This document shows positions 27,446 through 58,180 of a stretch of 64,000 bases of DNA, piece by piece (within the stretch, counting starts at the first letter, position 1; every line of letters starts with the position of its first letter). Origin of the DNA: Octopus sinensis. Lineage: Eukaryota. A program made the position numbers and the translations under genes. Where the stretch lies: the NCBI RefSeq assembly GCF_006345805.1, contig NC_043020.1:28396001-28460000 (forward strand). The letters are read 5' to 3'. The notes below the pieces were generated by a model, which saw nothing but the letters and a program-made list of their open reading frames with translations, did not search any database and was not told the origin of the DNA.

Positions 27446-29328
27446 TCAGTTGAGCTGTACAAGTTCTTGCTTAACACTGAAGCTTGGATCAAATGCCGAG
27501 CTTGACCCTCCAGTAGAATTCTCATCAACAACATCTGAGTTATCAACAACATCAACAGGAGGGGGCCCTGGAGATGATGTTTCGTAGACATTTGAGCCAA
27601 TTTTGTTGTAAAGGTTCATATCAACTCGCAGATACTGCAACATCTGCTTGTTCTTCTCATCAAGCTCTAAAGGATGCTTACGTTTAAAGCGCCAGTACAC
27701 TTTTTTGTTTGATGGATGCTTAATTCTTTCAGCAGCACCGACGCCAAACTCTGAGACCTTTTTAAAGAACAACACCGACACCCAGACAGGGTGTCGGTTA
27801 TTGGTGGCTTGTTGTTTCACGGGTGGCGCGATGGACTTTTGAGCAGCTGTCGTAGCCGACACACCCGTTCCATCATCATAACACTCAAGCAAGCGCTTCA
27901 TTCGTTTGCCGTGATTAGTGATAAAGGATGCCTTGTCCATAGTGTAAAATTCTGGAATAAAAGGGATCTCATAATCATCATCAGCAAGGACTACTTGAGG
28001 CTGGTCCCATTCTTTGGGTAAACTATTAATGGGTGGCAAAGGTAAGTTCTGAGTGCTGGGAGACGTTTGTATGCCGGACGGGAGAACACCAAGGGCTGTA
28101 GATTGAGCAGGAGTAGGGGGGATAGAAAGGACGGCAGATGAGTTGTGGGTATTTTGTTGTTGCTGTTGTTGTTGAGATGCTGCTGCAACTTGCTGGTTAG
28201 ACTGTTGCTGAGCTTGCTGTTGGACTTGCTGTTGCTGCTGCTGTGAAACAACAGCGGCTGCTGCAGCTGCCTGCGATGCGGAGTGTGCAGCTTGTGCACA
28301 GTACTGTTGTTGTTGTTGCAAGGCAGCTGCAGCAGCGGAAACATTGACAGAAGGCTGAAGACCAAGAGACATTCCAGACACCAACATCAATGCAAGTTTT
28401 TGCTCCATGAAATATTTGCTTAGTTCAATGGCTTTGTGTAGAGTTTCACTGTCGATAACCAAATCCCATTCATAAATAGCTGGATTTGTAGCCTGCATCG
28501 TAAACTCGCAAGCGTTCATTAAGGCCTTCAGCACACCTGCCATACGTACAATCTGACCAAGAGACTTCTCAATGGCGCTTCGACGACGTTCATCGTGATC
28601 CAGTTGACTAACCATGCTTGCCCACTCTTCGTCGTGCACACGGCACAGATCTTTCCAGGCTTCTGTCGAGAAAACATATTCTCGGTTTTGTTGATGATAT
28701 GTATGAAGTGTTTGAAAAATAGTTTTCATAGGAGGTGTGTCGGTAGTGAGAGGAATCGAATTCCAGATGGTTGAAAAGTTGGGATTGTGAGGGCAAGCTA
28801 CTAAATAGCGACTACTAAGCCAGGTTTGACCGTTGAGAAATAAATCCACGACATATTTTGGGTGACCCATACCTGTGTGATTAAAGCAGGTAGAATCTAA
28901 AGTTGTCATTTCACCATTCTCTACGTGAAACATTGGACCGCCATCATAGAGAACCAAGAGTTGATCGGGTCCTTTAGAATTTTCTTGGTCTAGTTCTAGC
29001 ATTTTGTGTAACTGATGGAGGTCTTCAGCAAAACACAGAATTTGTCCACTGTTCTTTCGAAGTACATGAGATAAATCTTCGTGAGTCATTGGCCCAGCAA
29101 TTAATTTTTGAGGTCCGGGGCCACTGTGAGGTGGAGCGCCAGGGGAAGTAGGACGTGATAAATGCCATTGCTTTTCGAGTTCTCTCTGGATTTCTAAAAG
29201 TGGTGTCATAAGTTGGCGGAGGGCAGCAGATTTCCGTGTGCCTGGGTAGGCACCAATCATTGTCCAAACTACAGGTGGTTCCTGCCATAGTTGATTCACT
29301 TTTATTTTTGTCTTTCTGCCCATCAGAG
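27446..29328 (-). CDS. Exon 2 of a DUF3987/YfjI-like AAA+ domain protein with poly-Q/A tract (702 aa spliced)
   Basis: 625-aa ORF preceded by acceptor ttttttttacAG (29329-30). Walker A-like GAYPGTRKS, LLVLYDGG, SSRYLVACP, FSTEAW, KSLGQIVRMAGVL and IDSETLHKAIELSKYF follow the DUF3987 motif order as I recall it. Confidence 0.85.
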
Positions 29329-30946
29329 CTGTAAAAAAAGAAAAAAAATTCTTTTAATATTTTTTTTTAATAACAAAAATCATTTAATTATCTCGTTACC
29401 AATATTTAAATAAGGTGATCACAAAATAGACAGCATTGGACAGATTATAATGGTATTAAGTTGCAATTCTTTACATTAAGTGTTTGAATCTGATAAGGTT
29501 GACTTATGATTCATCCTTGTGCTAGGCATGGCTTTGTGGTTAAGACTGCTTCTCAACCATGTGTTTTTGAGTTCAATTCTACTTTATGACACCTTGCACA
29601 AGTGTCCTCTATTAAAGCCTTGGGCTAGTCCAAGCTGTGTAAGTAGAGTTTGTAGATAGAAACTGAAAGAAGCTCATCATATTTGTGTATGTGTGTGTGT
29701 GTCTGTGTGTCCTTGTCTTGACATCCCATGACAGTCGTAAACAAGCCTCATCGTCATACAAATGGTGTCTTTTGTTTCCAATTTTCAATGAATTCATTTC
29801 TGGCCACAGAGAAAATGGAAACAAGTGTAGGTTAGTGACAGGAAGAGCATCCAGCCAGAGTTGAGGCAGGTCCAGTTTGACATCATTGGTTGTTTTTAGC
29901 TCGCATGCTTCTGAGTTCAATCCCACCATGTGGCACCTTGGGCATGTGTCTTCAGCTGTGGCTCCAAACCAACCAAATCTTGGAAGACAAAAACTGAAAG
30001 AAGCCTGCCTCGTGTGTGCATGTGTATGTGTGTGTATGAATATGTTTGTGTCTCCTTGTCTTGACATTGCGTGGTAGTTTGTAAATGAGTGTCACTGTCA
30101 TACAAGCAGTGTCGTTCATTTCCAATATTCTGTGAAGACATATTTGGCCATGGGGGAAACATTACCATTACTTGGAAAAGAGGTAAGGGTTGGTGGCAGG
30201 AAGGGCATCCAGCCATAGAATATACACCCCAATAAACTCTGTCTGACCCATGCAAGCAGTATAAAGGGGACATTAAAATGATGACGATGATGATGATAAT
30301 CCAAACTGAACATGAATTAGATATGAACACACACACCCACACACAGTCTAGAAAATTAGAATATTATGCCAAAAATGGTAAGTTGTCATCAAGTCAGAAC
30401 ATCAAAATTTCTTTGGCATTAAGTGCCCCCCCCCCCCAATATTTCATTGATGTCAGTTCACATTTGTGTGTTTATCTCAAAATATGAGAATGTACTGTTT
30501 CATAAAAAACATCATCATAAGCACAGCTATGGCTGTGTGGTAGGAAGTTTGCTTCCCAACCACATGGTTCCGGGTTCAGTCTCACTGCGTGGCATCTAGG
30601 GCAAATGTCTGCTACTATAGAGCAGAGCCAACCAAAGCCTTAGTGAGTGGATTTGGTAGAAGGAAGCTGGAAGAAGCCCATCGTCTATATCTATATCTAT
30701 CTACCTATCTGTGTGAGTGTGTGTGTGTGACATGTTTGACACCACCACTGCTTAACAACCAGTGTTGGTGTGTTTAAATCCCTGTAACTTAGCAGTTGAG
30801 CAAACGAGACTGATAGAATAAGTACCAGGCTTTAAAAAACGGTTTTTGTGTTCCTTAAATGGCTAATAAACACCTTCCACGCTGCAATTGTTTTCGTTCT
30901 AGCACACAATCTCAGATCAGGTCACTTGCTAAGCATGTACATCTCC

Positions 30947-30984
<38 letters not shown>

Positions 30985-31541
30985 AGTGGTGTATAACTGG
31001 CCCACTTATGAGTACCCTTCATTCATTGGACAATAAACTTTGTTTGTGAAGACCTATTGAGGCAAGTGAAATCAAAATTACTGACGTGACCAATAACAGC
31101 TCCGCCTGATTGGCACTTGTGCCAGTGGAACGTTAAGTGCACCATCTGAGAGTGATCATTGCCAGGGTCATTAACTGGCTCTCGTGCCAGTGGCATGTAA
31201 AAAGCACTATTCGAGCATGATCATTGCCAGCGTCACCTTACTGGCACATGTGCCGGTGGCATGTGAAAAACAACATTCGAGTGTGGTCATTGTCAGTGCC
31301 GCCAGACTGGGTCCCGTGCAGGTGGCATGTAAAAAACACCTATTGAGCATGGTCGTTGCCAGTGCTGGTGGCACGTAAAAGCACCCACTACACTCTTGGA
31401 GTGGTTGGCGTTAGGAAGGGCATCCAGCTGTAGAAACTTTGCCAGATTAGATTGGAGTCTGGTGCAACCTTCTGGCTCACCAGTCCTCAGTCAAACCGTC
31501 CAACCCATGCCAGCATGGAAAGCGGATATTAAACGACGATG

Positions 31542-31574
<33 letters not shown>

Positions 31575-32816
31575 TACTCTTTATACTTAATATAAATATA
31601 TATATACGCACACGTTTTATAGACACTGATTGTTGTCTAATTTGTGTCATATGTCATAAAACTTGTAAGACAATGTCTGGACTTAAAAGACATATGCTAG
31701 TTTCCAAAAACATTCCTTTAGAATCAGATTCCAAAGGGCAAAGATGTAGAAAAAACTTGAATGATATCCCTGTTACTTGTGTTTTAAACCCTGTCAGTCA
31801 GCAGCTGGTCTTAAAAGTCATCTGTGGGCTCATCAACAGAGGGATTGTGATGGGGTGTGGTGTGTGTGTGTGTTGATAGGACGGCTATCATAAATGGCAC
31901 CCATGTCAGTGACATGTAAAAGCACCCACTACACTTTCAGAGTGGTTGACGCTAGGAAGGGCATCCATCCATAGAAAAACATTCCAAATCAAACTGGAGT
32001 CTGGTGCAGCCTTTCAGCTTGCCAGCCCTGGTCAAACCGTCCAACCTATGGACAACAGGCGTTAAATGATGATGATAAGAATGATGACGATACACTCAGC
32101 AGGATTCCTCCAGTTTCTGTCAAAGAAATCCACTTACAAGGTTTTGGCCAGCCCAGGGTTATAGAAGACATTTACCCATTCAGTTAGACTCAACATAAAA
32201 CCATAGGATAACTTTGTCTTACTCTGTTAGAGGTGTATATCAATAACGGCATTTTGGACAACGACCAGATCACAAGACTTAACCAGAACTAAAGCGCCAC
32301 CGTTTCCAGCAAGAACAAATTATTTTATTTATAGGTGCAGCCACGGCTGATTGGTATGTAGTTTGCTTCCCCATCACATGGTTCTGGTTTCAGTTCCACT
32401 ACAAGACACCTTGGGCAAGTGTCTTCTAATCATAGACTCAAGTCAACTGAAGCCTTGCGAGTGGATTTGGTAGACAGAAACTGAATGAAGCCCCTGGTGT
32501 GTGCGTGTGTTTGTCCTCCTCCACCACCACCACCACCACTTGAGGATGGGTGTTGGTTTGTTTCCATTCGCATAACTTAGCAATTAGGCAAAAGAGACCA
32601 ACAGGCTTTAAAATAGAACAATAAGTCCTGGCATCAATTCATTCAACTAAAAATTCTTCACGGCAGTGCCCCAGCATGGCCACAGTCTAATAACTGGAGC
32701 AAGTAACAGATAAAAGATTATAAGAGTTATATAAAAAAAACTATTATCTGAAGGATTACCTCTCTGATGTAATCAGACAATGATGTTGTAATTTTGATTG
32801 AGATAAGCAGAATTCA

Positions 32817-33215
32817 TATACTCTTTACTCTTTTACTTGTTTCAGTCATTTGACTGCGGCCATGCTGGAGCACTGCCTTTAATCGAGCAACTCGACCCCG
32901 GGACTTATTCTTTGTAAGCCCAGTAATTATTCTATCGGTCTCTTTTGCCAAACCACTAAGTGACGGGGACGTAAACACACCAGCATCGGTTGTCACGCAA
33001 TGCTAGGGAGACAGACACAGACACACAAACATATATATATATACATATATATGACGGGCTTCTTTCAGTTTCCGTCTACCAAATCCACTCACAAGGCTTT
33101 GGTCGGCCCGAGGCTATAGTAGAAGACACTTGCCCAAGGTGCCACGCAGTGGGACTGAACCCGGAACCATGTGGTTGGTTAGCAAGCTACTTACCACACA
33201 GCCACTCCTGCGCCT
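32817..33215 (-). mobile_element. Family-2 SINE, full length
   Basis: Reverse complement of the 38512-38900 copy. Confidence 0.85.
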
Positions 33216-33629
33216 ATATATTTGTCTGTTGATAACCATTTTAATTCTACAGGACTTCCATTGCTATTTGGAGTCGTGGTACTCCGTCGGTTACGACGAT
33301 GAGGGTTCCAGTTGATCCAATCAACGGAACAGCCTGCTCATGAAATTAAAGTGCAAGTGACTGAGCACTCCACAGACACGTGTACCCTTAACGGAGTTCT
33401 CGGGTAGATTCAGTGGATATTTATTTCGAATAACTGTTTTTCGAATAATTGTTTTTGAACAATTTTCACAATGCGATCAATTTGATGGAACAGGTAAGCT
33501 AATGCACAACACAAACATTTGACCACAGGTAAACAAATCAGTGCAGTTTGTTCAGCCAACAAAATGCTGACCCCATCGTCTGCCATTTATGACAAGACAG
33601 TCCACCATATATATATATATATATATATG

Positions 33630-34070
33630 TGCAGAAGAGTCCAGAAGCTAGCTACCCGCATGGTTCTTGGTCTCAAGCATTTGTCTTATGAAGAAAGGCT
33701 GAAGACGCTCGACCTTTATTCTCTAGAAAAACGACGACGCCATGGTGATCTCATTCTTGCTCACAACATCATAAGCGAAAAATGTAACCTCTCAAAAGAG
33801 CTGTTCTTCACTCCTGCTCCAGAGCGTCGGCTGCGGGGTCACTCCGAAAAGCTCTATCTGCGATGATTTCATCTCAATTGAAGGAGAGGGGCTTTCTCCG
33901 TCCGGGTTGCAGATCCATGGAATAAGCTGCCGGACAAGATAGTGAAGATGCTGACGACCGCTCGGTTCAAAGTCTCTCTTGACCAGAAATGGCCTGAACT
34001 CTTTGCATGAACACCCTCCCTGTCCCTCTACATGGCCTTGCTTTTTGCTTTTTGAGCCAAAAAATTAACT
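33630..34070 (+). mobile_element. CR1-type LINE 3' fragment
   Basis: RVQKLATRMVLGLKHLSYEERLKTLDLYSLEKRRRHGDLI..RLRGHSEKL. Sister copy at 61070-61380 on the minus strand. Confidence 0.85.
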
Positions 34071-34787
34071 TATATATATATATATATCATTTATCTTTGC
34101 TTCACTCATTGAACTGTGGCCATGCTGGGGCACCAACACATTGATTCCAGTATTTATTCTTTAAGTCTGATACTTATTCCATCAGTCTCTTTTACCAAAC
34201 CGGCAAGTTACAGGAATGTAAACAAAACAATACTAGTTGTCAAGTGTTAGTGGGGGGCAACCACAGACACACGCACGCGCATATATATATATATATAGTG
34301 GGCTTCTTTCAGTTTCCATCTACCAAATCCACTCACAAAGCTTTGGTCTCCTTGGGCTTGTAATAGAAGACGCTTGCCCAAGATGCCATGTAATGGGACT
34401 GAACCTAAGACCATGTGGTCAGGAAGCCAGCTTCTTACAACACAGCCATGCCTGTGCCTGTGTGTGTGTGTGTGTGTGTGTGCATCCACACTGTATTAAA
34501 GCTGAAAAAAAATCTTCACAGACCGTTACTCCATTTCACATTACTCTCCATCAGACAATTGTGATCACAAGTGTCCGATGAACGGTAATGTGAAATTCTG
34601 AGAAACAGTTTGTGAAGATATTTTTCAACCTTAATAAACAGCATGTTACTCTGCCTTCAGTATATTTGTACTATTTCCTCCACCTTGTTTTGCATTTATG
34701 AGCTTACTTATGTGTGTGTGTGCATCATCATCATTTAACGTCCGTGCATATATATATATGTATGTATGTGTGTGTGTGTGTGTGTGG

Positions 34788-35078
34788 AGGCGCAATGGCC
34801 CAGTGGTTAGGGCAGCGAACTCGCGGTCATAGGATTGCGGTTTTGATTCCCAGACCGGGCGTTGTGAGTGTTTATTGAGCGAAAACACCTAAGAAGCTCC
34901 ACGAGGCTCCGGCAGGGGGTGATGATCCCTGCTTTACTCTTTCACCCACTCTTCTTCTGTTGGCCTGCTCGCTTAGCCAGCAGGGTGGCATCATTCGAAG
35001 GCTAAAACAATACGAACGCATTGTGACCAGCGATATGTAACTACATCTGATGGACTGGTCGGTCACGTGATCACGTGA
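34788..35078 (+). mobile_element. tRNA-derived SINE, family 4
   Basis: ggcgcaatggcccagtggttagggcagcg (A box) ... ggttttgattccc (B-like), a ~220-bp body, and a gtcacgtgatcacgtga tail next to (TA)n. Confidence 0.65.
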
Positions 35079-35113
35079 GATATATATATATATATATATA
35101 TAAAATAAATAAT

Positions 35114-35669
35114 AAATAAATATAAGAGAGTGGTCACTATATGGCTCACTCTAGCACCAGTTAATCCAAAAGGTTTCAACCACAAAAATACATGTTTCCC
35201 ATGAAAGTCAGTACGATTGTTAGCTCACACGGACAGGGCAAATAAAAAATAACAAAAATACAGATTATTTTGGGACAATTGTTTCGCTATTAATGAATTA
35301 AATGTAATTTTACTTACAAAAAAATCCACTTGTAGCTCGTCAGCCAAAACTATCTGGATGAAATCCACTCAATCAATCAATTTATCGTTATGGTAAAATC
35401 TGGTGTGTGATTGAGTGGATTTCATCCAGATAGTTTTGGCTGACGAGCTACAAGTGGATTTTTTTGTAAGTAAAATTACATTTAATTCATTAATAGCGAA
35501 ACAATTGTCCCAAAATAATCTGTATTTTTGTTATTTTTTATTTGCCCTGTCCGTGTGAGCTAACAATCGTACTGACTTTCATGGGAAACATGTATTTTTG
35601 TGGTTGAAACCTTTTGGATTAACTGGTGCTAGAGTGAGCCATATAGTGACCACTCTCTTATATTTATTT
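35114..35669. repeat. 556-bp fold-back: two ~262-bp arms and a 32-nt loop
   Basis: 35114-35375 is the reverse complement of 35408-35669; no mismatch seen by eye. Confidence 0.92.
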
Positions 35670-35999
35670 TGTAAAAATATTATAATATATTATAAAATAT
35701 TATAATAATCCAGGTTTCTCGGAGCACTAGGCCACTTGGTGTTGAATAGATATACTATTAAATTAGTATCTAATTCTCTCACCCTTATTAATTAATTATA
35801 TATATATATATATATATATCATCATTATTATCATCGTCATTTAGCATCCGTTGTCCATTCTGGCATGGATTGGATGGTTTGACCGGGGCTGGCAAGATGG
35901 TTCAACATGGTTTCTAAGGCTGGATGCCCTTCCTAATACCAACCACACCAAGAGTGCAATGAGTGCTTTTACATGTGACACCAGTATCTGCCACAGATG

Positions 36000-36775
36000 G
36001 TCCTGCTCGAACTGTAGATAAGATGCAGGTAGAAGCTCCATAAGATGTACCCAGTGTAAGCTATGGACACAAAAGAGGTGCAGTAATATCAAAGAAGGCT
36101 AACTGGGAAGATAGTTTTTGTATGTGGCAGATGCTCTGGAGAAATAAACACTGAAAATGTGCAGAGAACAGCTTCTGCCACATTCCAGGGAGAAAAACTA
36201 TAAGTAGTTTCCATTACCTAGGTGACCAAGTCAGTAGTGGGGGAGGATGCTCTGAAAATGTAGCTGCTAGAATAAGAATAGCCTGGGCAAAGTTCAGAGA
36301 GCTCCTACCTCTGCTGGTGACAAAGGGCCTCTCGCTCAGAGTAAAAGGTAGACTGTATGACGTATGTGTACAAACAACCATGCTACATGGAAGTGAAACA
36401 TGGGCCGTGACTGCTGAGGACATGCGTAAGCTTGCAAAGAATGAAGCCAGTATGCTCCGCTGGATGTGTAATGTCAGTGTGCATACAGGACAGAGCATAA
36501 GTGCCTTGAGAGAAAAGTTGGAACTAAGAAGCATCAGAAGTGATGTGCAAGAGAGACGTTTGCGCTGGTATGGTCATGTGTTGCGAATGGATGAGGACAG
36601 CTGTGTGAAAAAGTGTTACACCTTAGCAGTTGAGGGAACCTGCGGAAGAGGCAGACCCAGGAAGACCTGGGATGTGGTGGTAAAGCATGACCTTCGAACA
36701 TTGGGCGTCACCGAGACGATGACTAGTGACCGAGACCTTTGGAGATATGCTGTGCTTGAGACCACGGCTGTATAA
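36000..36775 (+). mobile_element. RTE-clade LINE 3' fragment
   Basis: [50 protein letters not shown]. Confidence 0.85.
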
Positions 36776-37871
36776 CCAGCTAACTTAGGAGTAACCTTCA
36801 TTCATTGGACAATGAACTTTGTTTGTGAAGACCTGTTGAGGCAAGTGAAATCAAAATCGACAGAAGCTATCAACAATCGCTAAGGATCCTTGTCTTTGGA
36901 GGACAGAACAGGAAGGGACACTGGACAGAGGTAGCAAGAGTGTATAAAAAGAAAGCAAGATGGGGGGGGGGGGTAAAATATGAATTGGATAGAATGAGTG
37001 GGGAAGAGAGAAGATGATGGCCCAGAGACTGGATAGGATGTAAGTAATAAAATAAAGGGTGAAAGTAGTAAATTAAGGGAGAGTTAATCAATGATATATG
37101 AGTTGAGGATTAGAAGAACATGATAATGAAGGGGGTAGATGGGGGGGGGGGTCAAGTGAAGTGGTTTTGGAGAGTAAAGATCACTAGAATCACAGAAAAA
37201 GATGATTTATAAAGTATGTTGTTCTGCCTTCATTTGGATTAGCAGATAACTGAAGTTGGCAAGTGAGAGAGGGGTCAGTTATAAAGAATAAGGAGAATGA
37301 GGGAAGATTAGACGAGGAAATTTGGTTAGGGGCCTAATTGTATATACAGACATTCTGTTTCCAGGACCTCAGCTACACCATAATGGCTGAGTCTTCTCAA
37401 ACACCACATATCACCAAATATTCTAGTCATTTGTTGTCCCCACTTGGTAGGATTCAAACTCCTGTGATCAGCCCTCACCCCTTGATCACAAGACTCTCCT
37501 CCACAAGTTCCCCTCATGAATCAGTCATTTGGTTTCACACCACCAGTTGGTCCTTCTGTACTTTTCGTCGAGTCCATTTAGTTGACAGCATTCAGGCCAG
37601 GTCTCTGGCATAAGGATACCTTTCTGCATCCCTCCCATGAATTGCAGAGGCCCTGTAAAGGGTCCTAGGTGCTGCCTTATCCTCCTGACTAAAAAAATTA
37701 AGATAATTCACTTATTAGGCATTGTTCAGCCAAGGGCTAATGTAGCAGACACTTGGCCAGTGTACGACAAAGTGAAACTGAACTCAAAAGCATTTGGTTG
37801 CTAAACAAACTCCTTAACTACATGACCCAGTCTGTGCCTATGGTGTACACACACAATATAGATACATGCAT

Positions 37872-37914
<43 letters not shown>

Positions 37915-38247
37915 CATACCCATATATAAATATATACTCTAGTGGTCATACCAAAATAGAATTTCTTAAATACTCAACTGGTTCGTTTGAAGTAAATGAC
38001 AGCTTACGTTACCTAGGCAACATAATTAGCAGAGGAAATGGTTATTCAGGAAGTAAAGCAGCCAGGGTAAGATTGGATTGGAAAAAGTTTGGAGAGTTGG
38101 TGTCTGTGTGGGCAGCAAAGGTTCTCCCCCTCAGAGTGAAGGACGGATTGTATGACATTTGTGTGAGAACTGTGATGCAGTTTGATAGTGAAACAAGGGC
38201 CTTGGATGCAAAATAAGTTGTGAATGTTAGAAAGAAATGTGTAATGT

Positions 38248-38479
38248 AAGGTGGCGAGCTGGCAGAAACGTTAGCACGCTAGGTGAAATGCTTAGCAGTA
38301 TTTCGTCTGCCACTACGTTCTGAGTTCAAATTCCGCTGAGGTCGACTTTGCCTTTTATCCTTTCGGGGTCAATAAATTAAGTACCGGTTACGCACTGGAG
38401 TCGATATAATCGATTTAATCTGTTTGTCTGTCCTTGTTTGTCCCCTCTATGTTTAGCCCCTTGTGGGCAATAAAGATAT
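38248..38479 (+). mobile_element. Family-1 SINE inserted in an RTE fragment, 16-bp TSD
   Basis: aagaaatgtgtaatgt at 38232-47 and 38480-95. Confidence 0.9.
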
Positions 38480-38511
38480 AAGAAATGTGTAATGTTAATG
38501 TGCATAAATTA

Positions 38512-38900
38512 GGTGCAGGAGTGGCTGTGTGGTAAGTAGCTTGCTTACCAACCACATGGTCCCGGGTTCAGTCCCTCTGCGTGGCATCTTGGGCAAGTGT
38601 CTTCTACTATAGCCTCGGGCCGACCAATGCCTTGTGAGTGGATTTGGTAGACGGAAACTGAAAGAATCCTGTCGTATATATGTGTATATATATATATGTG
38701 TCTTTGTGTGTCTGTCCTCCTAGCATTGCTTGACAACTGATGCTGGTGTGTTTATGTCCCCGTCACTTAGCGGTTCGGCAAAAGAGACCGATAGAATAAG
38801 TACTGGGATTACAAAGAATAAGCCCCGAAGTCGATTTGCTCGACTAAAGGCGGTGCTCCAGCATGGCCGCAGTCAAATGACTGAAACAAGTAAAAGTAAA
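38512..38900 (+). mobile_element. Family-2 tRNA-derived SINE, full length
   Basis: A/B-box head, atcttgggcaagtgtctt core, internal (TA/TG)n, gtaaaagtaaagtaag tail. Confidence 0.85.
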
Positions 38901-39064
38901 GTAAGTAAAATGCCAGGGTAAAGATGAGCCGAGAGAAAAACTGGGAATAAGAGGAATCGGGTATCGCATGCAAGAGAGACGGTTGCGCTGGTTTGGGCCT
39001 GTAATGAGAATGGAGAATGAAGTCTGGAAAAATCCAAATTAACAGAACTTGTGGAGGACGGCTT

Positions 39065-39390
39065 GGCTCTCTGTCGGTTATGACGACGAGGGTTCCAGTT
39101 GATTCCATCAACGGAACAGCTTGCTTGTGAAATTAACGTGCAAGTGGTTGAGTACTCCACAGACACTTGTACCCTTAACGTGGTTCTCAGGGAGATTCAG
39201 TGTGACCCAGAATGGGACAGGGCTGGCCCCCTTTGTATTACTGGTACGACTCATTTTTGCCAGGTGAGTGAACTGGAGCAACAAGAAATAAAGTGTTTTG
39301 CTTAAGGACGCAACATGCCACCAGGAATTGAACTCATGACCTTACGATTGTGAGCCGAATACCCTAACCACCAAGCCATGTAACTTCACT
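39065..39390 (-). mobile_element. tRNA-derived CORE-type SINE
   Basis: Head tggcttggtggttagggtattcggctcacaatcgtaaggtcatgagttcaattcc. Its 3' part also occurs at 33270-33420. Confidence 0.65.
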
Positions 39391-41136
39391 GGTGGACGAA
39401 GGAAACCAAGGAAGACTTGTGATAAAGTGAAGGTTGATCTGAAGATGCTGGATTTCATGGAGGTGGCAAAGAACCATACTAACTAGAGATGTGCACTCCC
39501 GCAGCATCTTGGCTCCCTTCAGTGAAATGTAGCCTGACATGAGGGGAACGCTTTACAGGCTGAGGGACTTTGTATCCTACCAAGCATATGTTGTACATCT
39601 CGCTGCCTCACATCATCCTAAACCCTTTCATCCACTTCCCCACCTTGTTGCTCACTTCCCACCACCTTCATACTTCTACTGAACCTATGTAGTGGAGACC
39701 CTCACCGCTTCATTAGACACATAAATAAAAAAGAGACTCCATTGTTCCACCTCATCCCTCTCACTTCCTTACCCATCACTGAACCTTTATACCAGAGACT
39801 GCAGCTATCCACCCTCATCCCTTCACTACGCTGAAGTATAAGGGACTACACTGGTCAGTCTGTATCCCTTCACTGGCCCAATGTATAAGAGAGTACAACA
39901 GTCCATCCTCATGCCTCTATAATTCCGTCTCTCTATTGCATCTCTGCATCTCCTCACCTTCTTCACCCTCCTTTACTACCAGCTATCACATTTTGACCAC
40001 CCCTGGGGCCACTTCTGTTTTCACCCTTTCTAACTGATTCTGCTCTAAATAACATTTTGCCACTGACGACTGTACTGATTTGGTCATGTGAGGCAGATGG
40101 ATGCCGATAGTGCCATAAAGAAGTGCCGATCTCTCAAGGCAAATGGAACACATGGAAGGAGATTGAGGAAGGCATAGGATGAAGTACTTAGGGACGAACT
40201 CAGAACACTGAACCTTTCAGGCGAGAAGACAAAGCACCGAGATGTCTGGTGCCTTGCTGTACTCAAGAAGACCCTGTCTTCCACAGCAGAAGTGTTAAGG
40301 CTGGTCACCCTGGGAGAGGGAATTGGCCTGCAAGAGTCATGTGTCAGTACCCAGAACAATCTGTAAAGTGGTTGGCGTTAGGAAGGGCATCCAGCCGTAG
40401 AAACCATGCCAAATCAGTCTAGAACATGGTGTAGCTCTCCAGCTTGCCAGCTCTGGTCAAACCGTCCAACCCATGCCAGCATGGACAACGGACGTTAAAT
40501 GATGATGATGGTGATGATCATCTTCATCATACCACTTTTCCTCATTCAGGTCCTTTTCATGTCATAGCTCCCTACCCTAAATCCCTTCCTGGGCCACATG
40601 AGCAACCATACATGCCTAAGGTTATTGAGTTAGCACTGACTTGCTTTCTTCACTCGCTTCTGACATCCTTGTCGGCATTGCTTCCACCCACGCCTTATTT
40701 CCCCTCCATGGTCTACATACCTAAGCTCTGAATACTCTCTACATTATCCTGTGACCCAGACAACCCCTGCCTTGTATTGGTGTCACGACACAAAACCGAG
40801 AACTCACACACCCTCAAAGAGAGACACTCTCCAGTGCCGGGTACAACAAAATGCACCCAGTACCCTTTGTAAAGCGGTTTGTAGAACAGAAGATAACATG
40901 GACTTCTGAGGCCGCTTTAATCAACCTTTGTAGTGCTGGTAACTTGAGAAAATGCACCCAGTACACTCTGTAAATTGGCGGGCGATAGGAAGGGCATCCA
41001 ACCATAGCAATCAAGACAAAATCAAATGACACATAACGACCATCAGTCCATGGTGGTCGCAGTTCCCAACAAGACATGGTTCGACAGTGACAACCCACAC
41101 CAGCATGGAAAGCAGACAAAAATAATGACGCTATGA

Positions 41137-41189
<53 letters not shown>

Positions 41190-41399
41190 AATATACATAT
41201 GTATAGGTGTACATTTAAACGCATACACATATTACGTGTAATATACAAATACACACACACACACACCCTGATATCAATCGCTACCGAGAAATAAATCAAG
41301 AATTTATCTAGTAATTTAATATACTCCTATTCGTCTTCTAATACATGCCACTGGCCACTATGGCGTGTGTTATATGTATGCACGTATATACAAACATAC

Positions 41400-41501
41400 A
41401 TACATACACACATACACGCACTGGCTAAGGCGAGACTGAAAAACGGGAGCATGCTAATAATTTAATGTCAATTATGTACGTCAAATTACATCTAGACACA
41501 T

Positions 41502-41544
<43 letters not shown>

Positions 41545-42167
41545 TACATTATACATACACCTACAATATATATATATATATATTATCCTTTAAGTTCGTT
41601 AATGGGAACGTTTTTGAATACGCATATAGAAACCCCTATTTTAAAATGCCGGCTTACAGCCCAGCATTAAAATATTTATAAATTCTGTCCAAAGATTATT
41701 ATTGTTATCATTATTATTATTATTATTACCATGTACATATATATACACAATATATTTATATAAATATACATACATTATATATATACATACATATATATAT
41801 ACACATACATACAATATATATATATATACATACATACAATATATATATATATACATACATACAATATATATATATATACATACAATATATATATACATAC
41901 ATACAATATATATAACATACATACAATATATATATATATACATACAATATATATATACATACATACAATATATATATACATACATACAATATATATATAT
42001 ATATACATACATACAATATATATATATACATACATACAATATATATATATACATACATACAATATATATATAACATACAATATATATATATACTACAATA
42101 TATATTACATAATACAATATATATAACATACATTACCCATACATTATATAAATATATATATATAACA

Positions 42168-42237
<70 letters not shown>

Positions 42238-42632
42238 ATATATAAATGCATATATACACGCATACACACACAGACATATATTCTTCAATACATTTCAGCC
42301 TCATGTCTGTGGCCGCCAATACATTTCCATCGCTTCCGACTCCCGATGGCCGTTTCAAAACGTGGAATCAACGTTATTTTCCCGATTTCCTGTTATTTAT
42401 TATGTAATATTATTAAGACAAATAGATCAAAGTATCTTATTGTTCATACATTTATAAACCGTCAGTGGAACTACGCCAGTCGAAAAGAAGACTATCTGAT
42501 TCACTCGTAGATAAACGACGGAACATCACATTATGGTTAATATATATACACATACATAGAAATGTTTGTGTATATATATATATATATATAGAATACGAGG
42601 GGTTTAGTTCAGTTGTCCTTTTTTTCCTTATA

Positions 42633-42665
<33 letters not shown>

Positions 42666-43012
42666 TACATACATATAGATATATCTACACATATATATAT
42701 ATGTAGATATATATATATAAACGCACACGTATGTATATATATATATATATACACACACATATAAATATATACATACATATATCTACATACATATATATAT
42801 ATATATATATCATATATATATATACATATATATATCTACATATATATATATACATATATACATATATCTACATATATATATACATATATCTACATATATA
42901 TATATACATATATCTACATATATATATATACATTATATATATATATATATATACATATCTACATATATATATATATTATATATACATATATATAATATAT
43001 ATATATATACAT

Positions 43013-43086
<74 letters not shown>

Positions 43087-43163
43087 CATATCTACATATA
43101 TATATAGATATATCTACATATATATAGATATATCTACATATATATAGATATATCTACATATAT

Positions 43164-43206
<43 letters not shown>

Positions 43207-43245
43207 ACACATATATATATGTATATATATAAACGCGCGCGCACA
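41400..43245. repeat. (TA)n microsatellite field with derived ~20-bp minisatellites (tacatacaatatatata, tatatctacatata)
   Basis: Direct inspection. Confidence 0.95.
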
Positions 43246-43927
43246 CACATATTAGATATGACGCAAATGAACATTGTAAATGTTTACCCACAAATAATTA
43301 TTTCCTTTTTAATTAAAAATTTAAATAACTACTTATTTCAAATTAATTATGAAGAAATCGTCAAAAAGGTCGATCGTTCAAATCGCGAGATTGAACGAAT
43401 TCCAAATATTACGCAAATAAAAATGTGGAGCCTTTTCTGATAGACTTAAATATGTATCGATATTTTCCAAGTAGAAGGGGAAAAAAAATCAAATATAATT
43501 CTATTCACATCTGTGATCGGATTCGATCCAAGCATTTGGTCCTAACGAGAAGGGGTTTATTTTGTCGGTTACAGAATTATCTAGATTTGAATCTGGTAGT
43601 AAAACTTATTCGCGCTGTCCATTGAGGTTTCACCAAGCAGACTCTGTGGTCAAAGGCGTCCCAGCTGTGACCATTCCGTCAATGTTTTCAAGCCAGTGCA
43701 CCCAGGAGGACCATGTGATCTGTCTTGTGTTCTTGAACGTTTCAAGACAGTGGAGCGTGAAATTTAAGGAAATTCAGCTAAATTTTGCATTAGATCGAAC
43801 GACCGTCTTCGATAAATTTATTCAGAAGAATTTAATTGGCAAATGGTGAAGCAGTATTTCAAACCAAACGTTTCCATTTTCTTTTTATTAGTATTTATTG
43901 AAGACGGCGGGCAATGAAATGGATGAA

Positions 43928-44223
43928 AGGTACTACTCGAGAACAGTGGTCCCGGTGCGCGCACTCGCGCTAGCTAGTCATGACTAGTCGATCCTTACTT
44001 TGTGTTTTTGTTATTTACTTTGTTTAAAATTTTTTAATTTCTGTTTTTGTGTTTTATTTACTTTGTTTAACAAAAATTATTTACTTTGTTTAAAAAATTT
44101 ATTTATTTTGTGTTTTATTTACTTCGCTGGGCAGTCGTAAGGATCGACTAGTCACGACTAGCTAGCGCGGATAAGCGACTAGGCGAGTGCGCGCACCGGG
44201 ACCACTGTTCTCTAGTAGAACCT
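43928..44223. mobile_element. MITE with long GC-rich terminal inverted repeats
   Basis: aggtactactcgagaacagtggtcccggtgcgcgcactcgc / gcgagtgcgcgcaccgggaccactgttctctagtagaacct. Flanks ggatgaa and ggatgga are a possible TSD. Confidence 0.8.
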
Positions 44224-44326
44224 GGATGGAAATTTCGCTACTACGAACGAACCATGAATTTATTTAGTGAGACAAGGCCGAATAACGAAGGTGATGGACG
44301 AAAAAAAAATGTCTGAAAACAAGAGA

Positions 44327-44366
44327 ATGGCGGCGGTGACGTCACAGGAAATAGGTGTAACCGGAA
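44327..44366. promoter_or_regulatory. Candidate cis-regulatory cluster (YY1-like ATGGCGGCG, CRE TGACGTCA, ETS CCGGAA) in a CpG-retaining patch of intron 1
   Basis: Three motifs within 40 bp, with another CCGGAAG at 44567. Motif match only. Confidence 0.35.
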
Positions 44367-45216
44367 ATGGAAAGAAACTAATTGAGTTTTGGGTTGGCAA
44401 GTTGACGGTCTTTCATAAATAATTGGTTAAAATCGAGAAATAGAGAAGAACGGTCGATGGCAAAACATGTCGTCGTCACACGGCAACAAATTTGGGGGAC
44501 AACTAGAGATAGTCGACATAAAACCAGCTCTGGTACCACATTGATTATTATTTTAATATATCGGCACCGGAAGAAAAGAAGAGGTAAAGCTGGAGACGTA
44601 GAAGAGGAGCGTGGCTTTTAGGGAGAGACGAGGTACCTCAAGGTACCCCGCTCAAGCCCGCCACTTCAGATTGTCACCCATGAAACATGTATAGCTATAT
44701 CTGTGTGTATATATACATTTATATGTATAGCTATATATATGTGTGTGTGTATATATATACATTTGGCGCATTTATATGTATAGCTATATCTATGTGTGTA
44801 TATATATATACATTTATATGTATAGTTCTATGTGTGTGGATATATACATTTATATGTGTACGTGGGAAGAGATCGTTTTGAATAATATATTTCGGTTCAT
44901 AATAAAACTATTTATAAGATGCTGCTAAAGCCGAAAGAATGCCGATTAAATTTGATGTTTTTTGATATTGTGTTTGGCTTAGTAATTTGTGATTTAAAAG
45001 AGTTATTTATTTTGATTCGAAATACATTTTAGAGAGGTGCATAGTGACAAATTTTGGCAAAATTTTACGATGTTAAAAGGGTTGTGGTGTGAATAGAACA
45101 AAAATTGGCACGAGTGAAAAGAGCAGTCACAAAGTGGGTGATCGAAATATGTGAATAAAATAATTATCAACAGATCCCCCATTTTACAACCGCGCGGTGT
45201 ACATTTATTTACTTAC

Positions 45217-45442
45217 CGGCTGTGCAAGAGAGCAAGGGAAGGAATATATATTCGGAAGGGCAGCCTATGGCATTAGCATGATTGGTGACTAGCCTCCGTA
45301 TGTTGTAGCTACCGACCAAGGCCAGATCCAATAAAGGCACCATCTGGGCAGTCTTGTAACAATCTTGCCAGTTGAACTGGCGTGTGCCCGAGTCTTGCGA
45401 CGGTGCCATGGTGCTCGTACCGCCTGGCCTGCCTTCGTCCAT
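45217..45442 (-). CDS. Exon 1 of the DUF3987-like gene
   Basis: MDEG..IRRLVTNHANAIGCPSEYIFLPLLSCTA ends at donor G|GTAAGT (45216). Phase 1 joins in frame to exon 2 (G+CT = Ala). The start codon choice (MDEG versus MAPS) is uncertain. Confidence 0.8.
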
Positions 45443-48400: not shown

Positions 48401-49574
48401 GATGTTGTTTTGAATTAATCATGCGTTATTTTGTGGCTTTGAGATTTCAATAATGTGAATTGATTATTTTTAGAATGACATTGTAGGGTGGGTGTGAGGG
48501 AACAGATCTGGCCAGCTTGAACATGAAACAGATAGATTATTTGAGCTGGACATAGCCAGCTTACATGCTAAAGGTTTACGGTAGTATTGGCCACCAATAC
48601 TTGACAACCGGTGTTGGTGTGTTTACATCCCCATAACCTAGCAGTTCGGCAAAAGAGAGTAATAGAATAAGTATCAGGCTTCAAAGAAAGAAAACAAGTA
48701 CTGAGGTTGATTTGTTTGACTAAAATATTCCTGTTCTGCTTGAGAACAGGAATATTCTCAAGCTGAATAAGAATCCTGGTCATGGCCAGTGCTGGTGGCA
48801 TATAAAAGGCACCTGGTACACTGTGTGAAGTGGTTGGTGTTAGGAAGGGCGTCCAACCATAGAAACCAAGCCGAAACAGACAGGAGCCTGGTTCAGCTCT
48901 CTGGCTTACCATGGCCAATCAACCTGTCCAACCCATGCCAACATGAAAAGCAGATGTTAAATGAGAATGATGACAAGACCAGCACTGCCTCAAATGGTTT
49001 GGTTGGTTTCTCCCAGTAAGCCTTATTTTTTCAGCAACTATCAAATAAGAAAACCCCAAAATTAAACATTAAGGACCCAAACATGAAAATAAATCACTTG
49101 CATAAAAGTAAATCTCTTAAGTGCCGGTGGCATGTAAAAGCACCCACTACACACTCGGAGTGGTTGGCGTTAGGAAGGGCATCCAGCTGTAGAAACATTG
49201 CCAGATAAGACCGGAGCCTGGTGCAGCCGTCTGGTTCGCCAGACCTCAGTCAAAATCGCCAACCCATGCTAGCATGGAAAGCGGACGTTATACGATGATG
49301 ATGAAATTACAGTTTTGTGATCACCATTTTCAGAATTGGATCTTTGCTTTTATCTTTTGCTCCTTACAGTCATGAGACTAAGGCCATGCTGGGGCACCAC
49401 CCTGAAGAGTTTTAGTCAAACAAATCAACCTCAGGACTTGTTTTCTTCCTTTGAAGCCTGATACCTATTCTATTGCTCTCTTTTACCGAACTGCCTGGTT
49501 ATGGGGATGTAAATATACCAACACCGGCTGTCAAGTGGTGGTGGGAGACAAACATAAACCCAAAGACACTCACA

Positions 49575-50700
49575 CAGTGGTTAGTGAGAGTGGTACAAGC
49601 CATGAACAGGGATGCTGCCAGTAAGATGAAGGTTGGCAACAGGAATAGCAATGAATTCAGGATACAGGTAAGAGTTCACCAAGGCTCAGTTCTCAGCCCC
49701 CTCTTGTTCATCTTAGTCCTCCAGGCCTTAACAGAGGAATTCAAGACCAGCTGTCCCTCAGAGCTCCTCTGTGCTGATAACCTGATTCTTATAGCTGAAT
49801 CACTCTCTGACCAAGAGAAGAAATTTCAGGTGTGGAAACAAGGTCTGGAATCTTAGGGCCTTAGAGTTAATTTAGCAAAAACCAAAGTCCTAGTAAGTGG
49901 GAAAACAGACAAATCACAAGTCCCTTCAGGGAGATGGCCCTGCTCAATATGTAAGAAGGGTGTTGGTAGAAACTCCATATATTGTAACCAGTGCAAGCTT
50001 TGGACACATAAGAGGTGTAGTGGTATCACAGGAAGGTTAACAGAGAATATAGTGTTTGTGTGTGGCAAATGTGCAGGTAGAATAAGCACTAAAAATACAC
50101 AGGCAATAGACTTCTTCAAATGCCCAAGTGAATCATAAGAAGTAGTAGATAGCTTCTGTTACCTAGGAGACCAAGTTAGCAGTGGGGGAGGAAGTTCTGA
50201 AAGTGTAGTTGCTAGGATAAGAACAGGATGGGTGAAGTTCAGAGAGCGTAACAAAGGGCCTCTCCCTCAGAGTGAAAGGCAGATTGTATGACGCCTGTGT
50301 ACATACAGCTATGTTATATGACAGTGATATATGGGCCTTGATTACAGAGAACTTGGAAAAGCTTGAAAGAAATGAATCTAGCATGCTCTGCTGCATGGGT
50401 GATGTCAGTGTGCACACATGACAGAGTGTAAGTGATTTAAGAGGAAAACTGGGTGTGAGAGGCATCTGATGTTTTGTGCAAGAGAGAAGAGAGAAGACTG
50501 CACTGGTTTGGTCATGTGATGGATATGGATGAGGACAGCTCTGTAAAGAAGTGCTGAGGGTACCTGTGGAAGGGGTAAACCGGGGAATGAAGGGGTAAGG
50601 AAGGATCTTCAGATGCTGGGACCTTAGTGAGGAAATGACAAGGGACCGGGAGGTGTGGGGATTTGCTGTACTTGGTAAGATGCATCAAACTAAGTGAACA
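49575..50700 (+). mobile_element. RTE-clade LINE fragment (RT motifs B/C, Cys-rich insert, C-terminus)
   Basis: VRVHQGSVLSPLLFILV..LLCADNL, then WPCSICKKGVGRNSIYCNQCKLWTHKRC, then decayed 3' motifs. Confidence 0.85.
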
Positions 50701-51739: not shown

Positions 51740-52790
51740 CATAATATATATGGCAGTTAGAGCTAAGAAACAGGCCTGGAGGAATGGGACTAGCAGGGAA
51801 CTGTATCAGATTGCCAGAAGGGATGCTATGAGACAAGTATGTCTAGCCAAGGGAGAAGCAGAAAAGAAGAAGTCTTCTTATAAGACTGAAGTGTTTTGGA
51901 TGGCAAGACAATATGTGGAAGAAAACTGTAATGTGATAGGGGAGAAATGTGTCTGCATGGATGATGGTGCACTTGCTTTTAATGATTTTGCAAAGAGGCT
52001 TGGAAATGTCATTAGGAAAGACTGCTGAATGTGGAACATGAATGGGAGGAGGGGAGCCTGCCAAATGTTGACCCAATTGAGGGACTGGCTACCCAAATCA
52101 ATTGTTCCATGGTAGATAAAGCAGTTAAGGATATGAATACACCTCCACTGAGATGCTAAAAATATCTGGTGGTGATGGGTTATGGTCTAGTCACCTGTAT
52201 TATAAATCAGGTGGGTCACGAAGGAGTCATATCCAATGACTGGTGTAGTAAGCAGCACCATAGTCAACTGCTACAAAGGTAAAGGTGATGCTTTAGATAA
52301 AAGTAATTACAGAGGTATCAAATTGCTGGATCAGGTGATGAAAGTTACAGAGAGTCATAGCCCAACTATTTAGGGAGGGAGTTAGCTGAGAGGAGATGCA
52401 ATTTGGCTTTATGCCAGGGAGAAGCACCACTGATGCTATATTTCTGGTAAGGCAGCTGCAGAAGAAATACATAGCAAAAGATAAACCTTTGTACTTGGCT
52501 TTTGTTGACTTGAAGAAAGTCTTTGACAGGGTCCCCCGATCCTTTATCTGGTGGTCAATGTAGAAAGTAGGGACAGACAAGTGGTTGGTGAGAGCTGTAC
52601 AAACTATGTACAGGAATGCTACCAGTAAGCTGAGGGTTGGCAATGAGTACAGGAAAGAATTTGGGGTACAAGAAGGGTTCACCAAGGATCAATGCTCAGC
52701 CCCCTCGTGTTCATCATAGTCCTACAGGCAATAACAAAGGAATTCAAGACAGGCTGCCCCTGGGAGCGCCTCTATGCTGATAAACTGTGG
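51740..52790 (+). mobile_element. RTE-clade LINE fragment (RT N-terminal half)
   Basis: NYRGIKLLDQVMKV..QFGFMPGRSTTDAIFLVRQLQKKYIAKDKPLYLAFVDLKKVFDRVP. Confidence 0.85.
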
Positions 52791-57874: not shown

Positions 57875-58180
57875 TTATCGCTTTCTTCGCAGAGAAAGGA
57901 TTTGCCTTCGTTTCCAGGAAGCGTGACGGGAGCCACCAATGGTCTTGTGGAATCCATGACCTTTTCCGAGACCTCTGGAAGAGCGACCAGCAGCTGTCAA
58001 ACCTCTCATCTCTCTGTGCTTGTGCACAGCCTTGCAAATCCAATTTATCTTGGGATCACGGCGAATAGCTTTGTGAAATGGGTCGACTAGGATCACTTCA
58101 AAGAATTTGAATGTTGAATCTTCAGCAACCCAGTAGGAGTTAAGCACTCGCAGAGATTTACAACGGCGACCAACCTTGTC
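57875..58180 (-). CDS. RPL15: 60S ribosomal protein L15, last coding exon
   Basis: tttcAG|GAC; [46 protein letters not shown]. Confidence 0.98.

Follow-up and report, generated by a model that had tools for sequence, protein, structure and literature searches.

Helicases carrying the DUF3987 domain have been described as phage helicases of superfamily 6 (SF6) with a winged helix-turn-helix (wHTH) domain at the C terminus, and the DUF3987/SF6 lineage was found in phages and archaeal viruses, not in eukaryotic viruses (Kazlauskas et al. 2016; PMC4889955). A bacterial member, AgaPH of Seonamhaeicola, is a demonstrated 5'-3' helicase, and mutations in its Walker A or Walker B (DExx) motif abolish unwinding (PMC11724360). 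We analyzed an animal gene encoding a DUF3987 protein, which lies on the minus strand at positions 27446-45442 of a 64,000-nucleotide stretch of the Octopus sinensis genome (RefSeq GCF_006345805.1, contig NC_043020.1, 28,396,001 to 28,460,000). This stretch is referred to as the window, and coordinates are window positions unless another sequence is named. The gene is a single-copy, intron-containing host gene and not a transposon; it very probably descends from the helicase of a mobile element, and the canonical motor activity of that helicase has probably been lost in the animal family to which it belongs. A preliminary description, made from the letters of the stretch alone, had regarded DUF3987 as uncharacterized, a view superseded by the biochemistry of AgaPH (PMC11724360).

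The DUF3987 helicases of phages and mobile elements, including AgaPH, the Corndog-type phage helicases, and YfjI of an E. coli prophage, are the closest described systems by sequence and fold. Like them, the octopus protein matches the Pfam family above threshold, shares their fold (Foldseek E ~1e-14), aligns with them colinearly, and retains the ancestral layout of an AAA+ domain followed by a small C-terminal domain, in octopus tentatively of helix-wing type. However, the octopus gene has no fused or adjacent primase, it contains spliceosomal introns, and it occupies a syntenic chromosomal position. In addition, a disordered linker of ~130 aa is inserted between the two domains, the C-terminal domain is not recognizable as the mobile-element wHTH from its sequence, and a terminal psi-K-x-E motif has been gained.

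Among solved structures, the best matches are MCM2-7 and archaeal MCM, with E ~1e-5 over ~400 residues. The octopus protein and MCM share an AAA+ core, a pre-sensor-1 hairpin, and a C-terminal appendage, which in the octopus protein is tentatively of winged-helix type. The MCM P-loop motif, GDP..[AS]KS, has a non-glycine residue before its lysine, and so does the P-loop of the octopus protein. However, the identity is ~12-15% with TM-scores of ~0.3, the N-terminal OB/zinc domain is missing from the octopus protein, and the catalytic Walker B and the basic residues of the hairpin are not conserved in it.

Two host proteins offer further parallels. Twinkle is a nuclear-encoded mitochondrial helicase that shares its ancestry with the T7 gp4 primase-helicase and whose primase activity was lost in animals. 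Likewise, the octopus gene represents a phage-type replicative helicase that was fixed as a eukaryotic host gene and probably lost part of its ancestral activities, although Twinkle is a RecA-fold SF4 protein and an active mitochondrial motor, whereas the octopus protein is an AAA+/SF6 derivative whose motor motifs are lost. MCMDC2 is a degenerate MCM paralog that has kept the fold, carries degenerate Walker motifs, and plays a non-motor role in DNA metabolism. The octopus protein similarly combines an MCM fold with degenerate motor motifs; however, MCMDC2 is a duplicate of a cellular MCM, while the octopus protein very probably comes from a mobile-element DUF3987 helicase, and the two are related in sequence at the superfamily level only.

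Gene structure and genomic context

The gene is assembled from two open reading frames (ORFs) that join through canonical splice sites.

45209-45442, minus strand: ORF of 77 aa, from the ORF list
27446-29323, minus strand: ORF of 625 aa, from the ORF list
45217-45442, minus strand: coding exon 1, aa 1-75 plus base 1 of codon 76, from the ORF and donor site
29329-45216, minus strand: phase-1 intron, GT...AG, 15,888 bp, from the splice sites
27446-29328, minus strand: coding exon 2, from the last two bases of codon 76 to aa 702, from the ORF, spliced translation, and tblastn
27446-27448, minus strand: stop codon TGA, in exon 2

With a slash marking the exon boundary, the donor (G/GTAAGT) reads ...ACAGCCG/GTAAGTAAAT on the minus strand, in the context TGCACAGCCG/GTAAGTAAAT, at 45217/45216, and the acceptor ((Y)n-CAG/) reads ttttttctttttttacag/CTCTGATGGGC at 29329/29328. 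The joined coding sequence of 2,109 nt keeps an intact frame and gives a product of 702 aa, with the junction ...LLSCTA-A-LMGRKTKIKV.... The preliminary description had proposed this very structure, and the ORFs of 77 and 625 aa, the phase-1 GT-AG sites, the 15,888-bp intron, and the 702-aa product were all re-derived in every detail. The gene spans 17,997 bp, and the sequence is base-for-base identical to O. sinensis CM016882.1:28413446-28451442. The spliced product is 100% identical to XP_029650360.1 (O. sinensis LOC115223824) and to CAI9739949.1 (O. vulgaris) and 99% identical to the product of O. bimaculoides LOC106883402. RefSeq and UniProt label the gene 'uncharacterized protein' or 'DUF3987 domain-containing protein'; as the model is already held there, it is the interpretation that is new and not the splice.

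Given the long intron (15.9 kb), one might suspect a gene-model artefact or an unexpressed pseudogene, in which two unrelated ORFs are connected by chance splice sites. Four independent lines of evidence confirm that the spliced gene is real and leave this explanation with next to no credibility. First, the splice point lies within DUF3987, where joining the exons yields a single unbroken domain, colinear with homologs from prokaryotes and phages that have no intron (e.g., PLLSCTAALMGRKTKIKV vs PLLSALGTVIGGSVCIEI). Second, the intron position is common to orthologs: Sinanodonta, a unionid bivalve, Littorina, a caenogastropod, and Aplysia, a heterobranch, all have a phase-1 GT-AG intron in the same codon, ahead of LMG or LLG, with lengths of 2,606, 1,942, and 2,406 bp, respectively. 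The orthologous intron is shorter in O. bimaculoides, at 9,471 bp, than in O. vulgaris, where it measures 15,389 bp.

Third, the junction is present in assembled reads. A Logan contig of run SRR27666085 (1,590 bp), whose nucleotide identity of ~78% indicates another, related cephalopod, consists of two abutting blocks, 280-503 aligning with window 45443-45217 and 503-1532 with window 29329-28292. The exons are joined in this contig at the predicted bases, the whole contig being ten times shorter than any intron of the octopods. It is most simply read as a spliced transcript, from a library of unconfirmed type. Near position 700 the contig contains a frameshift, located in the Pro/Gly-rich segment that follows ...SRPTSPGA, and the ortholog frame resumes downstream, reflecting either an assembly error or a real indel. 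A scallop contig of 2,056 bp (SRR19746222) carries a 658-aa ortholog uninterrupted, with the same junction. Fourth, exon 1 taken alone has a dN/dS of about 0.05 against the SRR27666085 contig, indicating that it is itself under purifying selection.

RefSeq isoform X2 of O. bimaculoides (628 aa, MPT+LMGRK...) uses a different first exon with the same acceptor and therefore lacks the N-terminal AAA+ helices encoded by exon 1. In the window, ATGCCA/GT at 55904 (minus strand) could be the equivalent of that exon, as an unverified candidate.

The coding sequences of O. sinensis and O. bimaculoides differ by 58 synonymous and 2 non-synonymous changes (dS 0.136, dN 0.0012), and the resulting dN/dS of 0.009 implies an important function. 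Within Octopus, the linker is constrained as well as the AAA+ and C-terminal domains. Compared with the SRR27666085 contig, protein identity is 92.5% and synonymous sites are saturated, and a protein of Argonauta hians belongs to the same cluster at 90% identity.

The position of the gene is likewise conserved within the genus. RPL15 lies upstream and co-oriented with the DUF3987 gene in both the window and O. bimaculoides, and in three chromosome-scale Octopus assemblies the locus sits between RPL15 and a MALT1-like gene. No synteny was found beyond Octopus; in Sinanodonta, Aplysia, and Littorina the flanking genes are different ones or lack calls. In O. bimaculoides, RPL15 occupies 337-2624 of the orthologous-locus sequence, with the same gene order as in the window. 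The downstream neighbor in O. vulgaris, at 30059-37498 of the locus sequence, is the MALT1-like paracaspase, with Ig domains and Peptidase_C14.

Since DUF3987 otherwise occurs in mobile elements, retroelement debris surrounds the locus, and one snail model is labeled 'tigger transposable element-derived', the gene could be supposed to belong to a transposon or endogenous virus that is active or was so until recently. That is very improbable. tblastn found a single copy within the window, and a linker-free profile search returned about one ortholog per mollusc species in cephalopods, bivalves, and both major gastropod groups. A repeat search around the exons found no long terminal repeats (LTRs) or terminal inverted repeats (TIRs) bracketing them, only microsatellite coincidences and intronic copies resembling short interspersed elements (SINEs), and there is no primase, integrase, capsid, or other element gene nearby in the window, nor a primase in the orthologous loci. 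The RPL15 synteny between Octopus species, the intron position common to mollusc classes, and the low dN/dS also speak against such an element. Taken together, these observations bear out the earlier suggestion of a co-opted host gene. The preliminary description had named three outcomes that would tell against it, namely no DUF3987 match, no junction evidence, or many copies with transposon termini; what we found instead is a strong domain match, a junction recovered in two contigs, and a lone copy in the window, free of such termini.

Domain organization and motor motifs

Pfam DUF3987 (PF13148) matches the protein with E=3.2e-29 and 102.7 bits, against a gathering cutoff of 27, in two stretches of which the best covers aa 146-389, and PHROG 2373 'DNA helicase' matches with E=1.9e-16. 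In the 702-aa protein, no other Pfam domain was credited, no Pfam MCM match was obtained, and no primase is fused. A sequence search of the PDB returned nothing meaningful, NCBIfam gave low-complexity noise only, and PADLOC tied the AAA+ domain to none of the known defence systems. An AlphaFold2 (AF2) model built on a 17-sequence alignment shows a confident AAA+ domain at aa 22-393, with pLDDT above 85 over most of it and above 90 for aa 30-100. With Foldseek, the top 50 PDB matches of this domain are all MCM subunits (E from 1.6e-5), and the BFVD matches are phage DUF3987 primase-helicases (E from 2.8e-14), so that the fold is confirmed as MCM-like (superfamily 6) at the level of the model, in agreement with Kazlauskas et al. 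2016 (PMC4889955). Both the DUF3987 identity and the distant MCM likeness put forward in the preliminary description thus held up. The features of the protein are as follows.

Within 45217-45442 (exon 1), minus strand: N-terminal helices of the DUF3987 domain, from aa ~22 (...AIGCPSEYIFLPLLSCTA), by colinearity and AF2
28376-29328, minus strand: exon-2 part of the MCM-like AAA+ (DUF3987) domain, aa 76-393, by Pfam, AF2, Foldseek, and PHROG
29228-29254, minus strand: Walker A/P-loop GAYPGTRKS, aa 101-109, with Lys108, by the family consensus G..G[ST]xK[ST]
29021-29041, minus strand: degenerate Walker B ILCFAED, aa 172-178, with Glu177-Asp178 at the Asp-Glu position
28898-28933, minus strand: predicted pre-sensor-1 beta-hairpin, aa 208-219, MFHVENGEMTTL, without a basic tip, by AF2 strands at 208-212 and 215-219
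28808-28810, minus strand: Arg249 in LSSRYLVA, aligned with the conserved Arg of mobile-element helicases (..DRILF..)
27977-28375, minus strand: predicted disordered linker rich in Gln/Ala/Ser/Pro, aa 394-526, by AF2 pLDDT about 30, below 50
27599-27976, minus strand: conserved C-terminal domain, aa 527-652, KRMKRLLECYDDGTGVSATTAAQKSI...NNRHPVW...LFFKKV..FGVG...WRFKRK, by AF2 and conservation
27464-27475, minus strand: VKQE, aa 694-697, a motif of the psi-K-x-E SUMO-consensus type in the disordered C-terminal tail

To compare motifs, 39 animal members were aligned with 9 primase-fused mobile-element helicases. The residues associated with nucleotide binding are partly shared. The loose P-loop consensus peculiar to the family is present in all nine mobile-element helicases, and the octopus protein retains it, with Lys108; this lysine is replaced by Arg in all six heterobranch gastropods. 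Arg249 is invariant in 17 mollusc orthologs and conserved in the nine mobile-element helicases (9/9), and we presume a likeness to the MCM 'SRF' arginine-finger motif, which makes it a candidate arginine finger. The lid motif, K330...R337, is also kept in octopus, as in the mobile-element proteins. In Centruroides, Diadema, and one further lineage, both the P-loop and Arg249 are gone and the C-terminal domain is kept.

In contrast, the motifs of the motor proper distinguish the two groups completely. The Walker B pattern hhhh-x-D-E-[LV] occurs in 9/9 mobile-element helicases, whereas the D-E pair occurs in 0/39 animal members, which have ED in octopus and unionids, EN in scallop and heterobranchs, ER in caenogastropods, and DD, DN, or other pairs elsewhere. 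Similarly, the hairpin motif [D/N]R[K/I] is found in every one of the nine mobile-element helicases and in none of the 39 animal proteins, the octopus sequence being VENG at this place. The hairpin is shortened in several lineages, and a long insert takes its place in caenogastropods. In MCM-type motors, the basic tip of the pre-sensor-1 hairpin grips and pulls DNA. The octopus protein thus falls within Pfam DUF3987, while its Walker B and hairpin do not support the designation of an active SF6 helicase.

These comparisons bear on whether the gene might still encode a working helicase, that is, a host MCM-like 5'-3' motor that would restart replication, take part in repair, or act on the DNA of organelles or viruses, its functional Walker B being Glu177-Asp178. 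The fold, Lys108, Arg249, and the lid residues Lys330 and Arg337 are all retained, very strong purifying selection extends across the entire AAA+ domain, the bacterial relative AgaPH is active, and acidic-acidic (D-D) Walker B variants occur in functional ATPases such as DnaA. We nevertheless consider a working helicase unlikely. The D-E pair is missing in all 39 animal members, the sister lineages have E-N or E-R and the heterobranchs an altered P-loop lysine as well, the basic hairpin tip is lost in all members and the hairpin itself deleted or replaced in several, and the scorpion and sea-urchin members have dispensed with the P-loop and Arg249. Accepting that the domain derives from a mobile-element helicase, as the preliminary description held, its present helicase activity is doubtful, since the motifs found in all nine mobile-element proteins are lost; 'helicase' probably denotes the ancestry of the animal proteins and not what they do today.

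Following the AAA+ domain, the linker is variable in length and sequence among orthologs and Gln/Ala-rich in octopus. Within Octopus, it has accumulated 13 synonymous changes and 1 non-synonymous change and is therefore constrained. Weak Pfam matches to TFIIA, Arrestin_C, and EPL1, all located in this Gln-rich segment, were dismissed as compositional.

The C-terminal domain is the best-conserved block across molluscs. Modeled alone with AF2, it reaches a pLDDT of 88.5 and a pTM of 0.84, with the topology H-H-H-beta-beta-H-H. The best Foldseek match in the PDB is not significant (E=0.26), and the top list consists almost entirely of winged-helix DNA binders, including MarR, MexR, QsrR, PadR, TFE-alpha, the Orc1 WH domain, and FOXO. 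No Pfam, PHROG, or PADLOC family matches the domain, its hidden Markov model (HMM) retrieves animal family members only, and hhalign against the C-terminal tails of 17 mobile-element helicases gave a non-significant probability of 8.6%. Descent of this domain from the ancestral mobile-element wHTH is therefore plausible but unproven. The domain contains the basic clusters KRMKR and RFKRK.

Within the last 45 aa, a psi-K-x-E motif is present in 16 of 17 mollusc group-A proteins (the group that includes octopus) as well as in hemichordate, nemertean, and brachiopod members, whereas it is found in none of the 9 mobile-element helicases and in none of mollusc group B. By the known consensus, VKQE is a putative SUMO-type site. 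Overall, the layout of the animal family is fixed, comprising the AAA+ domain, a disordered low-complexity linker, a winged-helix-like C-terminal domain of ~125 aa, and an acidic tail that usually ends in psi-K-x-E.

Distribution, ancestry, and proposed role of the family

The breadth of the family was determined by an exhaustive HMMER search of 1.84 billion representatives with a profile of 17 full-length mollusc proteins, which gave 5,771 matches at E<=1e-3, of which 45 reached E<=1e-30. Beneath the mollusc orthologs lies a tier of proteins of 650-890 aa that score 120-260 bits, with alignments that take in the C-terminal block as well as the AAA+ domain. Its named members, labeled 'uncharacterized', are the following.

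Ptychodera flava: hemichordate
Lineus and Tubulanus: nemerteans
Lingula: brachiopod
Diadema: sea urchins
Centruroides: scorpions
Haliotis, Tegillarca, Solemya, and Argopecten: a second mollusc paralog

These distant animal relatives match Pfam DUF3987 at 37-99 bits, with the scorpion member at 24.8 bits, just under threshold. Lower-ranked matches are primase-helicase fusions, in which the partners are a DnaG zinc ribbon, Toprim, BT4734-AEP+PriCT-2, NrS-1 HBD, Prim-Pol+PriCT-1, or DnaB_N. Among the named matches there is no vertebrate, insect, or nematode protein, no direct test of absence having been made in those groups. In planorbid snails, including Biomphalaria, the models carry an N-terminal extension ahead of DUF3987 that resembles a BED zinc finger (C..C...H...H) and represents either a real fusion or a merged gene model; NCBI names the Biomphalaria model 'tigger transposable element-derived protein 2'.

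A bootstrapped neighbor-joining (NJ) tree of the AAA+ core (337 columns, 46 taxa, 300 replicates; unrooted) included the 9 primase-fused mobile-element helicases, which had been taken from the matches most similar to the animal profile, and gave the following splits.

Nine mobile-element helicases versus all animal proteins: 98% bootstrap
Mollusc group A (octopus, bivalves, gastropods): 99% bootstrap
Mollusc group B: 92% bootstrap
Nemertean group: 99% bootstrap
Lingula-containing group: 89% bootstrap

These results show that the octopus gene, the cephalopod ortholog of a pan-molluscan gene, belongs to a two-domain animal family that is undescribed. Paralogs A and B were already present in early molluscs. 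The two-domain relatives come from nemerteans, a brachiopod, a hemichordate, echinoderms, and chelicerates; with both protostomes and deuterostomes represented, the co-option is at least bilaterian in age and not a cephalopod event. The simplest history is that the replicative helicase of a mobile element was captured once, before bilaterians radiated; with thin sampling of mobile elements and an unrooted tree, this is the simplest reading and not a demonstrated one. The direction of transfer and the type of donor are suggested by the overwhelmingly prokaryotic and phage distribution of the domain. Overall, we regard descent of this host gene from a mobile-element helicase as highly probable.

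The nearest non-animal relatives are prokaryotic and phage proteins, which might suggest a recent horizontal transfer from bacteria or phage, or contamination of the assembly. Neither is at all likely to account for this gene. It has spliceosomal introns with canonical sites and is embedded between RPL15 and the MALT1-like gene in three chromosome-scale Octopus assemblies. Moreover, its identity to mobile-element helicases is ~20-23%, compared with 50-98% among animal orthologs, and the family extends over several phyla.

As for the role of the protein, the reading that we favor, and consider rather more probable than its competitors, is a host gene derived from a helicase whose product is now a non-translocating, ATP-binding nuclear DNA-binding factor. 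Processive unwinding is most likely not the conserved function, since the D-E pair and the hairpin tip are lost family-wide, nucleotide-binding residues are lost in some members, and the C-terminal domain is kept; we judge the loss of canonical helicase activity in the animal family to be probable. Since the scorpion and sea-urchin members lack the P-loop and Arg249, the common function cannot, it seems, depend on ATP hydrolysis, and in these lineages it appears ATP-independent. The octopus protein itself probably still binds ATP and forms MCM-like oligomers, because its fold, the P-loop Lys, Arg249, and the lid residues Lys330 and Arg337 are kept under very strong constraint. It may act as a slow or non-hydrolysing nucleotide-gated switch or scaffold, in which the winged-helix-like domain would bind DNA or a partner, while the Gln-rich linker and the terminal SUMO-type site would mediate regulatory interactions.

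A role in the nucleus, associated with DNA or chromatin, is suggested by the basic clusters of the winged-helix-like domain together with the linker rich in Gln and the SUMO-consensus motif near the C terminus. A regulatory role in nuclear DNA binding is offered as a tentative proposal, and the arena of the protein could be the control of replication and repair or the regulation of chromatin and transcription. In its broadest and equally tentative form, the proposal is that a phage-type MCM-like motor may have become a nucleotide-gated, SUMO-regulated DNA-binding or chromatin switch, an ancient nuclear factor of bilaterians at large that is found in molluscs, nemerteans, brachiopods, ambulacrarians, and chelicerates.

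Several points weigh against the reading of a non-translocating nuclear factor derived from a captured helicase. The Glu-Asp pair of octopus and unionids is a conservative swap with which hydrolysis might still be conceivable, and a shift of the alignment by one column alters which acidic residue is the missing one, although D-E is recovered in no register. Neither Foldseek nor hhalign gives statistical support to the winged-helix assignment, and the SUMO site and nuclear location are suggested by short motifs only. The 98% split, with just nine mobile-element helicases, neither proves a single capture nor identifies a donor. A literature search on the locus and protein identifiers found no paper in the library covered, and of the 13 papers there that mention DUF3987, none deals with animals.

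Surroundings of the gene and significance of the family

The other long ORFs of the window are reverse-transcriptase fragments, RPL15 exons, and low-complexity or microsatellite translations, in keeping with the earlier remark that the transposons of the region are decayed. Rfam and tRNA scans of the window found nothing. The RPL15 gene (57875-62268, minus strand) is represented by three exon ORFs.

~62090-62268, minus strand: RPL15 exon ORF
60553-60726, minus strand: RPL15 exon ORF
57875-58243, minus strand: RPL15 exon ORF

The intron of the DUF3987 gene contains decayed repeats, microsatellites, and a unique hairpin. The hairpin (43928-44223) is a GC-rich nested inverted repeat of ~300 bp, located ~1 kb below the donor, with 41-nt arms at 95% and inner 33-nt arms at 97%, and its arm sequence occurs nowhere else in the window. 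The intronic segment 40800-43200 has a GC content of 0.26, and its (TA)n and (TG)n microsatellites produce 'YIYI' ORFs on either strand that are long but spurious. In the intron's 3' part (30517-32498), a unit of ~66 nt is repeated four times in tandem (31111-31367), and SINE-like copies occupy 30517-30614 and 32331-32428. Decayed reverse-transcriptase pieces of the long interspersed element (LINE) type are found within the intron, antisense to the gene, at 36317-36775 (plus strand), and between the gene and RPL15 at 49473-49856 and 52396-52563 (both plus strand). At 11387-13377 (plus strand), a fragment of reverse transcriptase (weak RVT_1) precedes an Asn-rich ORF of 412 aa, which has no Pfam match but looks GIY-YIG-like by eye at its C terminus; together they may represent a decayed Penelope-like retroelement.

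Several aspects of the family appear to be undescribed, namely its bilaterian-wide distribution, the common intron of ancient date, an extreme constraint, motor motifs that are systematically lost, and the unclassified C-terminal domain. Its age is evident from the common intron, the two mollusc paralogs, and its occurrence in protostomes and deuterostomes, and none of the named matches belongs to the standard model animals (vertebrate, insect, nematode), which would explain why it has gone unstudied. The C-terminal domain adds a conserved module that has no entry in Pfam, PHROGs, or PADLOC, and the family-wide loss of the Walker B D-E pair and the hairpin motif leads to a testable hypothesis, in which a motor has turned into a switch or scaffold. 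Host genes derived from the replication proteins of mobile elements are rare and informative. In animals, this family would be the second clear example of a host gene that was once a phage-type replicative helicase, and the first to come from the DUF3987/SF6 lineage.

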